From NCBI GenBank assembly GCA_004431415.1, contig QPMI01000610.1, positions 1 through 64,000 of the forward strand: a DNA stretch of 64,000 nt. The letters are read 5' to 3'. Every line of letters begins with the position of its first letter. Positions within the stretch are counted from its first letter, which is position 1. The stretch comes from Cyanophora paradoxa CCMP329 (lineage: Eukaryota; Plantae; Glaucophyta). Of this stretch, positions 56,573 to 59,500 are shown piece after piece. A program made the position numbers and the translations under genes. The notes beneath the pieces were generated by a model. The model made no database searches, was not told where the DNA came from, and saw only the letters and a list, made by a program, of their open reading frames with translations.

Positions 56573-59500
56573 CTAAAGGGGGAGCCTATTCCGGAGCTGC
56601 GCTGCTTCTGCTTGCCGACCAAGGGCATCGTATGCCTCCGCAAGCTTCTCTACGGTTTCGCGCACGGCTGCGTTAGTAGCGCCCAACAGTGGTTCCATAA
56701 TTTGCAGTGCCCGCTCCAGCATTGGGACAGCATCCTCCACTCTTCCGCGCGTCGACAAGAAGAAAGCAAGGTTTCGTAGAGCCAGCCCGGTGTCGACATG
56801 TGTCGGTCCCAGCGACGTCTCCATGATTGCAAGCACCCGCTGGGACAATTGTCGAATCACGACCGACCAGCATGTCCGCTACACGCACCCTGTACAACGG
56901 TTCTGCCTCGTCGTACTTTTGTTGCGAGACGTATAGGTATGCGAGGATGGTCAAAGGACTCCCTACGAACGCGTGCATCGGCCCTAGTGCTGCCTCCCGA
57001 GCCGCGAGCACTTCCTGCGCATGCGCACCAGCCCCTTATAAATGAATAACATAAATTAAATGTAAAACGACATGATCACTAATGAGTTTCGAATTCACAT
57101 GCCCAATATGCCATTTTTTTTCGCATGATAGGGGCTTCACAAATTATCAATGCACCTTGTATAGCATCTCAGCTTTGTCGTTCTTTCCCTGTAACTTGTA
57201 CAGCTCCGCTAAGTGATCCAGAGGCTCCTCCGCAAACGGGTGCAGCGACGTCGACCCCATGCACATGGCCAACGAAGCCTCATGAGCCGCGAGCGCTTTC
57301 TGGATCGGGGCGTGTCTCATGATCATTGATCTCAGAGAAGGCTGGCCATATCATGATCATGACATCTCATTCGATTTACCTTGTACAGCGCCTCTGCCTG
57401 GGCGTACTTCTCCTGCACCTCGTACATCTTTGCGAGGTTGTTCAGGGTCATCCTTGTTTCTGAATGCGTCAGCCCCAGCGCCGCCTCCCGAACCTCGAGT
57501 GCTCGCTGGCGCATTCGCATGCGCACTTTGAGCAAAGGCTGGCCGTGGCACTTTCAAGTTATGTACATGCCTATAGCGACGCATGCGCACCTTGTACAGC
57601 GGTTCGGCCTCGTCGTATTTCGCTTGCACCATGTACAAATGTGCCAAGTCGTTCATGGTTGTCCCTGTCTCTCGGTGCCTCGGCCCAAGAGCCACCTCGT
57701 GAATATCAAGTGCCCTCTGATTGTGTATAACGAGATCCGTGAGTGTACATGTACATCGTCTACGTGGACCCGGCTCACCTTGAACAGCGACTCCGCCTCG
57801 TCTCTCTTACCCTGCCAGAAATACACCTTCGCGAGATCGCCCAGAGACCCCGCCGTATCGGGATGCGATGGACCCAGCGCAGCCTCCAGAACCACAAGCG
57901 CCCGCTGTTTTCATCCCCCAGCATCCACAATCAGTAAATTTTGCAACCGTTGTTCTCATTCCGCAAGAGACATTGCAAGTCTTTTACCTTAATAAGACTC
58001 TCTGATTCATCGTATTTCTTCTGCGCACCGTACATTCTTGCAAGGCAGAGAAGTGGCTTTGTAGTGAGGGGGTGTGTCGGCCCTAATGCCATCTCCCAAA
58101 TCGCCATCGCCCGCTGCAGTCATACTGATTAGCTCTTGCCTTCGAAATTAAAGTTTTGAGTTCCAGTGCGACAAACAGCTAGTGCTTCTGCCTTGGATAT
58201 ACTCACCTTGTATAGACCCTCTGCCTCGGTACAGTTTCCCCGCGCCTCGATCAGGGCCGCGAGGTTGTGGAGGGACGCTGCTGTGTCCGGGTGGGTCAAC
58301 CCAAGCGCCTCTTCTGTAGCTTCGAGTGCACGCTACGTTGTGTATCAGTCATGTAAACGCTATGTCCAGTTGCAGCATCATTCGCGCACCCTGAACAAGG
58401 GTTCGGCCTCATCATACTTCGCTTGGGCGAAATATAGTGCCGCAAGGTTGTTAAGAGATGTGGTCGTGTTGGGGTGTGTCGGTCCCAAAGCCGCCTCGCG
58501 GATTGCAAGCGCTCTCTGATCGATATCACCAAATCAGTTTTAATTTTCTATATCGTTTTGCATCTTGATCGATTTTATAAATCGTACGCATTTTGCTTTC
58601 GCGATTAGCCCGCACCTTGTAGAGCGACTCCGCCTCACTGTACTTCCCCTGTCGTTTGTAGAGCAACCCAAGAGTGCTGCATGACATTGCCGTGGTGGGA
58701 TGAATAGGTCCCAGGGCAGCTTCCGCAATGGCCAAGTCTCGCTGCTCTTTCCAAATTACGGATGCAGTGTATCCACATTCAAATTTAATGTATCATTAAT
58801 TAAGCGCCGAACCTTGTACAGCGGCTCAGCCGCGTCAAATTTACCCTGGAAGTAGTACAGCACTGCAAGGCCATGCAGGACCGCACCCGTAGAAGTGTGC
58901 ATTGGGCCTACAGCTGCCTCCATTATCGCGAGTGCTCGCTGCCGACATCCCCTGACCCAATCAGTTGTTTCCAACATACGTTTACTGAGCGAGCTATAGC
59001 GCATTATGAATTAAAGCTTCAGATTATGGTGAAGTTTTTGCACCTTGTATAGGGGCTCGGCTTCGTCGTACTTTCCTTGCTTCTCGTACAGTTGTGCAAG
59101 GTTCTTAATGACAATCGCTGTAAATTGATGTGTCGGTCCTAACTCAGCCTCCCAAATCGCCAGTGCTCGCTACACTCGCAATCAATTCGACCGCTTGCCA
59201 TGGTAACTATAATCAGTGCACCTCATAGAAAGGAACAGCCTCCGCGAATTGTCCGAGCTCCAAAAGAACCGAACCGCAAGTGTTGAAGTCGTCAGCTGTG
59301 CCCACGCCGCTGAGTTCCAAGGCCCTTCGATACGACAAAGCAGCCTCTTCAGCACGTCCAGACTCCACCCAGTACTGCACGAGCTCGTGCGATGTTTCGG
59401 GTACTCCTAGGCACCGCAGAATATCCAGCTCTCCAAGAAGTGTCGCGAGCCGATCGCCTTCCCCTGCGCGGGACAGTTGCCACGGGCCCTCCTCCGTCCG

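Follow-up and report, generated by a model that had tools for sequence, protein, structure and literature searches.

A nephrocystin-3-like STAND gene of the glaucophyte Cyanophora paradoxa carries an old array of one-repeat-per-exon TPR cassettes

The stretch of DNA analysed here (the window) comprises the first 64,000 nucleotides (nt) of contig QPMI01000610.1 from assembly GCA_004431415.1 of the glaucophyte Cyanophora paradoxa CCMP329, numbered on the forward strand. Near its end, on the minus strand from about 63338 to 56573, lies an intact nuclear gene, about 6.8 kb long and split into roughly 27 exons, which is probably transcribed. It codes for an NLR-like protein ending in a long series of tetratricopeptide repeats (TPRs). 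Eleven of these repeats are encoded by consecutive exons of almost uniform length, one repeat per exon. Alignment of related proteins to the window showed that the gene is colinear with the Cyanophora paralogs P0002 and P0003 from the N-terminal DUF4062 domain through the nucleoside triphosphatase (NTPase) and helical domains into the TPRs, and that it is free of stops and frameshifts along the way. A partial model of the gene itself is publicly available as Cyanophora_paradoxa tig00021348_g20523.t1 in EukProt, and will be referred to as P0001.

The TPR array was examined with a script that required of every candidate exon on the minus strand an open frame, an AG upstream and a GT downstream. 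All 11 cassettes passed, ten of them with exactly 126 nt and one with 144 nt, confirming the run of symmetric phase-0 exons described in the initial annotation of this DNA; the peptides quoted there were all found in the sequence, and its limits correspond to the first base of the intron preceding cassette 1 (59221) and to the final base of the stop codon (56573). Such a periodic exon layout is far beyond chance. With two further repeats in the last exon and a degenerate one in a 381-nt exon upstream of the cassettes, the array totals about 14 repeats. The 12 introns involved measure 52, 105, 71, 100, 57, 93, 83, 62, 85, 80, 141 and 49 nt. Every one of them is of the GT-AG type and in phase 0, GTGCR donors are present in most, and several display a CTGAT/CTAAT-like motif 15-30 nt upstream of the AG that fits a branch point. 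The four whose length is divisible by three all contain in-frame stops. The claim that these introns of 49-141 nt are mutually unrelated was borne out by local alignments against shuffled sequences (mean z-score 0.4). Introns outside the array display mixed phases, as read from the exon boundaries. Cassette exons always end in AAG or AGG before the GT, the exons that follow mostly begin with C, and the GC content at third codon positions (GC3) of the TPR exons is 0.64. As the cassettes are symmetric phase-0 exons with lengths that are multiples of three, it also holds that skipping or duplicating any of them would leave the reading frame intact.

Each cassette encodes one 42-residue TPR of the kinesin light chain (KLC) type, and single exons pass the Pfam cut-offs for TPR_12 or TPR_10 (44-48 bits). 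In an AlphaFold (AF2) model of the TPRs of P0002 (predicted local distance difference test score, pLDDT, 92), helix A spans exon residues 15-30 and helix B is cut midway by the exon boundary, so that an exon corresponds to one period of the superhelix and not to one structural TPR. The best matches to this model in the PDB are the TPR domains of KLC1 and KLC2, with 44-45% identity and template modelling (TM) scores of 0.8-0.86. The seven most variable of the 42 exon positions are 26, 16, 19, 6, 22, 29 and 30. In the register obtained from the Pfam TPR_1 and TPR_2 alignments (TPR position equals exon residue minus 17), residues 19, 22, 26, 29 and 30 are TPR positions 2, 5, 9, 12 and 13, and residue 23 is position 6. 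It was demonstrated by Magliery and Regan that positions 2, 5, 9, 12, 13, 33 and 34 are the most variable across 6,887 TPRs of all kinds and lie on the concave face, where ligands bind (PMC1261162). Every one of the five helix-A positions is among the seven most variable of the array, with a hypergeometric probability of about 2.5e-5 by hand count. The earlier observation that helix-A positions vary among the exons was therefore right as a description but does not stand as a sign of diversification, because the same positions vary in TPRs generally and their variability carries no signature of immune diversification.

At the protein level, the predicted architecture of a TIR-like DUF4062 domain, a NACHT domain, a helical domain and about 14 TPRs is that of a nephrocystin-3-like STAND protein with an NLR-like tripartite layout, in which an N-terminal effector-like domain, an NTPase and C-terminal repeats follow one another in the same order as in P0002. 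The initial assignment as a DUF4062-NACHT gene is upheld by a NACHT match above the Pfam cut-off in P0001 (38.1 bits against 26.7) and by the DUF4062 exons located upstream (62066-63338). P0001 also exceeds the cut-offs of AAA_16 (45.2 bits against 32.6) and NPHP3_N (33.6 against 24.8), while its truncation keeps this partial model below that of NPHP3_hel (20.6 against 27.9). Its DUF4062 score of 23.5 bits is just under the cut-off of 24.7 because the domain's first half is missing from the model. In the gene itself, TPR_NPHP3 yields 23-33 bits per single exon against a cut-off of 100, and single NACHT exons are too short to reach the Pfam cut-off alone. In P0002 the cut-offs are exceeded by DUF4062 (42.4 bits against 24.7), NACHT (34 against 26.7), NPHP3_N (25.5 against 24.8), NPHP3_hel (29.4 against 27.9) and TPR_NPHP3 (148.6 against 100). 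NB-ARC is absent among the Pfam matches of P0001 and P0002, whose best NTPase matches are NACHT, AAA_16 and NPHP3_N. Direct reading showed that both the Walker A motif (GPSGCGKS) and the Walker B motif are intact.

At least 15 Cyanophora paralogs were found among the 'tig' proteins, which brings the family to at least 16 genes in this genome; their models contain from 2 to 22 repeats, and no further family fragments were detected elsewhere in the 64-kb window. Homologues occur in Amoebozoa (Balamuthia, Pelomyxa, Mastigamoeba) and in many bacteria and archaea, often under the labels 'nephrocystin-3' or 'DUF4062 domain-containing protein', and these relatives are 30-36% identical across the whole N-terminal 600 residues. 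A 2026 preprint on an anti-phage system of bacteria describes DUF4062 as having a TIR-like core and links it to the depletion of NAD+ (bioRxiv 10.64898/2026.06.25.731849), which makes an effector or output role for the N-terminus of the Cyanophora protein plausible by analogy.

Regarding the gene model, a search with the P-loop exon pair (60897-61292) retrieved P0001 as a protein of 424 residues, 99% identical in two matching stretches that skip an in-frame intron; the exon list leads to an estimate of more than 1,300 residues for the whole gene. P0001 spans 60018-62151 of the window. It begins within DUF4062, omits part of one exon and runs across a donor before it ends at about 60018, so that the N-terminus and the whole TPR array are missing from the public model. 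In the model of P0003, a GTGCG-type donor is read through at the end, directly after a TPR repeat and at a position equivalent to that in the array gene, which is an indirect hint that the exon structure of this paralog may be similar. The 28-codon in-frame intron between the first two NACHT exons is revealed by two-stretch matches in all homologues. When the seven 5' exons were joined with a local script, a candidate 7-nt micro-exon entered the frame to give VPVDLRWGIT, matching P0002. Two introns, with donors at 62263 and 61965, are apparently of the GC-AG type. Searches were run exon by exon or with P0001 and the paralog proteins; the one for homologous proteins with the 127-residue exon at 59222-59602 returned no match. 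The intron just past the Walker A Lys/Ser occupies almost matching positions in the homologue from Balamuthia (4441-4578, between GSGK and SALV) and in Cyanophora (61011-61095, between GCGKS and ALLA), and from its position it may be an old intron common to both. The coordinates of the exons are collected in Table 1.

Table 1. Exons of the NLR-like gene in the order of transcription, with the basis of each assignment
Feature	Position	Strand	Basis
Exon 1: N-terminal tail from the proposed start codon (63338-63336) and DUF4062 start (VFLSSTFR)	63096..63338	-	Colinear with P0002
Exon 2: DUF4062 (...LFFVPV)	62592..62685	-	81% identity with P0002 residues 60-91; AG/GT boundaries
Inferred micro-exon, 7 nt (ATCTGCG), restoring the conserved D-L-R of DUF4062	62394..62400	-	AG/GT flanks; frame kept
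DUF4062 exon, followed by an apparent GC-AG intron	62264..62300	-	P0002 alignment, boundary reading
DUF4062 exon	62066..62115	-	Exact mapping of P0001
21-nt exon (FLKDRYG), followed by a GC-AG intron	61966..61986	-	P0001 mapping
Exon between the FLKDRYG and GAFINAI exons	61839..61883	-	P0001 mapping
Exon (...GAFINAI)	61649..61751	-	P0001 mapping; ends approximate, 1-2 nt
Linker exon upstream of the NTPase; middle spliced out in P0001, aligned throughout by P0002	61381..61590	-	5' end approximate
NACHT exon, Walker A (GPSGCGKS)	61095..61292	-	P0001 mapping, Pfam
NACHT exon (ALLANW...ANLLR)	60897..61011	-	P0001 mapping
NACHT exon, Walker B	60640..60812	-	P0002 alignment, P0001 mapping, Pfam
NACHT exon	60470..60561	-	P0002 alignment, P0001 mapping
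NACHT / helical-domain-start exon	60223..60416	-	P0002 alignment, P0001 mapping
Helical-domain exon; donor read through by P0001, which then stops	60063..60163	-	3' end approximate
Winged-helix-like exon (weak HTH_NWD1 match)	59814..59996	-	Pfam, paralog alignment
Short exon after the winged-helix-like exon	59676..59714	-	Paralog alignment
381-nt exon: helical-domain end and one degenerate TPR	59222..59602	-	Weak match to TPR_NPHP3 positions 18-116, 23.5 bits against cut-off 100
TPR cassette exon 1, 126 nt, phase 0-0	59044..59169	-	TPR_12, 44.1 bits
TPR cassette exon 2, 126 nt	58813..58938	-	Open frame, AG/GT
TPR cassette exon 3, 126 nt	58616..58741	-	Open frame, AG/GT
TPR cassette exon 4, 126 nt, nearest the consensus	58390..58515	-	TPR_10, 48 bits
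TPR cassette exon 5, 126 nt	58207..58332	-	Open frame, AG/GT
TPR cassette exon 6, 126 nt	57988..58113	-	Open frame, AG/GT
TPR cassette exon 7, 126 nt	57779..57904	-	Open frame, AG/GT
TPR cassette exon 8, 126 nt	57591..57716	-	Open frame, AG/GT
TPR cassette exon 9, 126 nt	57380..57505	-	Open frame, AG/GT
TPR cassette exon 10, 144 nt, with a loop insertion of six residues	57156..57299	-	Open frame, AG/GT
TPR cassette exon 11, 126 nt	56889..57014	-	Open frame, AG/GT
Last exon: two further TPRs and stop codon (56575-56573)	56573..56839	-	Pfam, boundary reading

The genome of Cyanophora has a published GC content of 67.6% (PMC6704402), with which the 65-83% GC of the window outside the gene agrees. 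The whole gene (56000-63500) constitutes a low-GC island of 49-58% GC inside a region of 65-83% GC, and the limits of the island coincide with those of the gene. By eye, the paralog proteins are rich in Ala, Arg, Gly and Pro, which suggests a drift in composition of the low-GC copy. Just downstream of the 3' end of the gene, where the GC-rich neighbour meets the island, is a run of about 38 G residues (56050-56087). Horizontal gene transfer or a viral origin of the low-GC gene was considered and rejected, its nearest relatives being Cyanophora paralogs and its coding region being interrupted by about 26 spliceosomal introns. A second low-GC island (37200-42500, 50-55% GC) contains, on the plus strand, a gag-like open reading frame (ORF) with a CCHC zinc knuckle (37198-38385), an ORF of 631 residues that contains a YVDD motif and looks like reverse transcriptase/RNase H (39528-41423), and one of 338 residues that looks like a tyrosine recombinase (41494-42510); this content, assigned by reading the translations, suggests a DIRS-like retroelement. 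Two direct repeats were also observed. One is a duplication (53839-54372 and 63463-64000) with 95.7% identity over 539 nt that extends past the end of the window and whose copies, 9.6 kb apart, bracket a GC-rich stretch of long ORFs together with the NLR-like gene; it may have arisen by segmental duplication in tandem, in which case another copy could lie outside the window. The other (19621-21694 and 25807-27864) extends over about 2.1 kb with 86% identity.

Exon-encoded repeats in candidate immune receptors have been reported before. In the brown alga Ectocarpus, 13 of 24 NB-ARC loci carry TPR domains assembled from exons of 126 nt that encode 42 residues each (124 such exons in total), and inactivated TPR exons in introns, which constitute the main evidence for shuffling, were described together with positive selection (Zambounis et al. 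2012, PMC3341825). The precedent invoked in the initial annotation is therefore real. As in the Cyanophora gene, a STAND NTPase is combined there with KLC-type 42-residue TPRs, one per frame-preserving 126-nt exon, in a multigene family. However, the host in our case is a glaucophyte, the NTPase is NACHT/nephrocystin-3-like with a DUF4062 N-terminus instead of NB-ARC, and tblastn revealed no inactivated TPR exons in the introns (49-141 nt) of the locus. Fungal NLRs, including those with the Podospora TPR structures 4Y6C and 4Y6W, likewise join a NACHT or NB-ARC domain to 42-residue KLC-type TPRs with variable concave-face residues. Their TPR, ANK or WD repeats of 42 residues are more than 85% identical, evolve in concert and are polymorphic in number (Dyrka et al. 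2014, PMC4986451), whereas the Cyanophora repeats, with 53% amino acid identity (maximum 64%) and 58% nucleotide identity, lie well under 85%; moreover, the fungal genes lack the division into one repeat per exon. The domain order of the Cyanophora gene is that of NPHP3 and of the DUF4062-NACHT-TPR family of bacteria, archaea and Amoebozoa, from which it differs in being one of at least 16 copies in its genome and in its periodic exons, absent in the two eukaryotic relatives examined. Prokaryotic genes have no spliceosomal introns. Finally, the KLC TPR domain (PDB 5OJ8, 6SWU, 3CEQ), which is the best structural match to the P0002 model and has the same 42-residue period, consists of six TPRs and, unlike the Cyanophora protein, is not accompanied by an NTPase. 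We found no paper combining Cyanophora with NLR and TPR, those mentioning Cyanophora paradoxa and NACHT being on other subjects, and the Cyanophora genome paper mentions neither TPR nor NB-ARC (PMC6704402).

The age of the repeats was estimated from their divergence. The mean identity among the repeat exons is 58% at the nucleotide level (maximum 71%), 53% at the amino acid level (maximum 64%) and 43% at third positions, and neighbouring exons resemble each other no more than distant ones do (0.586 versus 0.582). In agreement with an old array, synonymous divergence (Nei-Gojobori dS) is saturated or undefined in 18 of 45 exon pairs and has a median of 1.6 in the remainder. Scaffold codons exhibit a nonsynonymous divergence (dN) of 0.20 and a dN/dS of about 0.12 among repeats; at variable codons dN is 1.23 and dS 1.08, values so saturated that neutral and diversifying change are not separable. 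A sensitive local tblastn detected no extra TPR-like pieces, such as inactivated relic exons, in the introns or on the opposite strand. In a comparison with 46 full repeats from 15 paralog proteins, the best match to the array repeats reached 71%, always between the most consensus-like repeats; no near-identical repeats of the kind expected from paralogous exons in exchange were thus present among the 15 paralogs, as far as proteins tell. All 14 DNA runs of the organism contain 100% of the sampled 31-letter words of the locus. Six probable RNA assemblies hold 0.53, 0.53, 0.53, 0.53, 0.47 and 0.44 of them, where the exon list predicts 0.50 for a transcript with all exons, 0.53 if the 3' flank is added and 0.235 for the TPR exons alone, which implies that the assemblies contain most or all cassettes. 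Ongoing diversification was supported by none of the tests run, and the results point to an old and fixed array. The operating receptor-diversification system put forward in the initial annotation is not sustained by repeats this old, by unrelated introns devoid of relics, by paralogs lacking near-identical repeats or by word shares that fit full inclusion.

Regarding the origin of the period, the TPR region of the Balamuthia homologue is divided into exons of 525, 201, 135, 105, 123, 189 and 342 nt, and that of the even more intron-rich Pelomyxa homologue into exons of 150, 63, 81, 72, 60, 102, 21, 69, 102, 36, 162, 69 and 225 nt. The strict period is specific to Cyanophora within the family, relative to the two eukaryotic homologues examined, and the irregular introns of the latter indicate that intron density alone gives no period. 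The presence of 12 introns at one codon boundary of a 42-codon unit is best explained by repeated tandem duplication of an exon together with its intron, an ancient event as we infer it. It could be argued instead that an intronless TPR array acquired introns in parallel at the same site of each repeat, through a proto-splice site or a mobile intron family. The AAG or AGG at every exon end and the high intron density of the Cyanophora genome (9.2 introns per gene, mean length 86 bp; PMC6704402) would be compatible with this. However, 12 independent insertions at exactly the same codon boundary, with none elsewhere inside the repeats, are very unlikely, the next exons mostly start with C in place of the purine of a classical proto-splice site, the array introns share no common sequence family, and intron positions are scattered in the equally intron-rich Pelomyxa and Balamuthia homologues. 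Parallel gain is consequently regarded as highly improbable.

As for what the array does at present, active exon-cassette diversification, either by combinatorial skipping or by duplication and swapping within and between paralogs, would be favored by the phase 0 of all 12 introns and the cassette lengths in multiples of three, by an exon size identical to that of Ectocarpus, by a multigene family with such disparate repeat numbers and by variable residues that face the binding groove. Against this stand the lack of recent duplicates (at most 71% nucleotide and 64% amino acid identity inside the array, and 71% amino acid identity to 15 paralogs), the unrelated introns without relic or inverted exons, the full set of words in the 14 DNA runs and the RNA word share fitting full inclusion, and we consider this explanation improbable. 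Only slightly less doubtful is the broader proposal of a genome-wide set of Cyanophora NLR-like genes with symmetric single-repeat TPR exons that are varied by regulated skipping or, in the course of evolution, by exchange between paralogs. A non-immune role is also unlikely, although it deserves somewhat more credit than either of these. Cyanophora is a biflagellate, and the protein might act in the flagellum or in transport as a scaffold or switch, in the manner of animal nephrocystin-3 or of KLC, its TPR variability then reflecting the surface for one fixed partner. Pfam families based on NPHP3 match above their cut-offs in the gene (NPHP3_N) and in paralogs (all three in P0002), many relatives are named 'nephrocystin-3' and, among solved structures, the TPR domains of KLC come closest; yet a family of at least 16 genes with a scattered presence in bacteria and archaea fits an expansion of STAND proteins in defence or conflict better than a single ciliary gene, and DUF4062 is linked to anti-phage defence. 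Least credible of all is a decaying or recently immobilized copy whose low GC content stems from weakened selection or from an association with mobile DNA and whose array is no longer functional. The gene indeed forms a 7.5-kb island of 49-58% GC, the sole other such island in the window is the retroelement and public annotation failed to model the gene as a whole, but its roughly 27 exons are all open and colinear with the paralogs, the scaffold codons are constrained (dN/dS about 0.12 among repeats) and the exons are found in the probable RNA assemblies.

The explanation that we favor, and regard as likely, is that of an NLR-like, nephrocystin-3-like STAND gene whose array originated by ancient exon-plus-intron duplication, is now made up of fixed constitutive exons and serves a STAND switch. 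Long ago, one 126-nt exon would have been duplicated in tandem many times along with its phase-0 intron; exons and introns would have diverged since then, and the array would behave today as a fixed constitutive set. A single extended binding groove would be lined by the concave-face residues that the repeats individually provide, so that the TPRs may work as a ligand-binding and autoinhibitory arm and DUF4062 as the likely output domain. Binding of a putative ligand in the groove would release autoinhibition, upon which the NTPase would oligomerize, bringing the N-terminal domains together and thereby activating them. Several points weigh against this explanation. The low-GC island could reflect relaxed constraint. 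A ligand, NTPase activity and an immune role are putative for every member of the family. The case for constitutive inclusion is a word-share estimate, which is blind to minor isoforms and would miss the absence of one or two exons, each accounting for about 1.7%, the RNA label of the six runs is itself a guess, and the 14 DNA runs may all derive from one strain. Furthermore, the 5' structure depends on the candidate 7-nt micro-exon and two putative GC-AG introns.

It follows from the comparison of known systems that the layout of one TPR per 126-nt exon, described so far only for NB-ARC-TPR genes of brown algae, occurs in a glaucophyte and with a different class of NTPase. As the public model of the gene is truncated and the paralog models look similarly broken, current annotation probably underestimates the NLR-like repertoire of this reference glaucophyte. 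At this locus, the outcome for the idea of immune diversification is mostly negative. If the genome-wide proposal were nevertheless true, it would constitute a second, independent origin of an exon-cassette receptor system of the Ectocarpus type, and the first in Archaeplastida. The importance of a second, independent case of the layout lies in the question that it raises, that is, whether one repeat per exon is a mere scar of exon duplication or is used for varying receptors.

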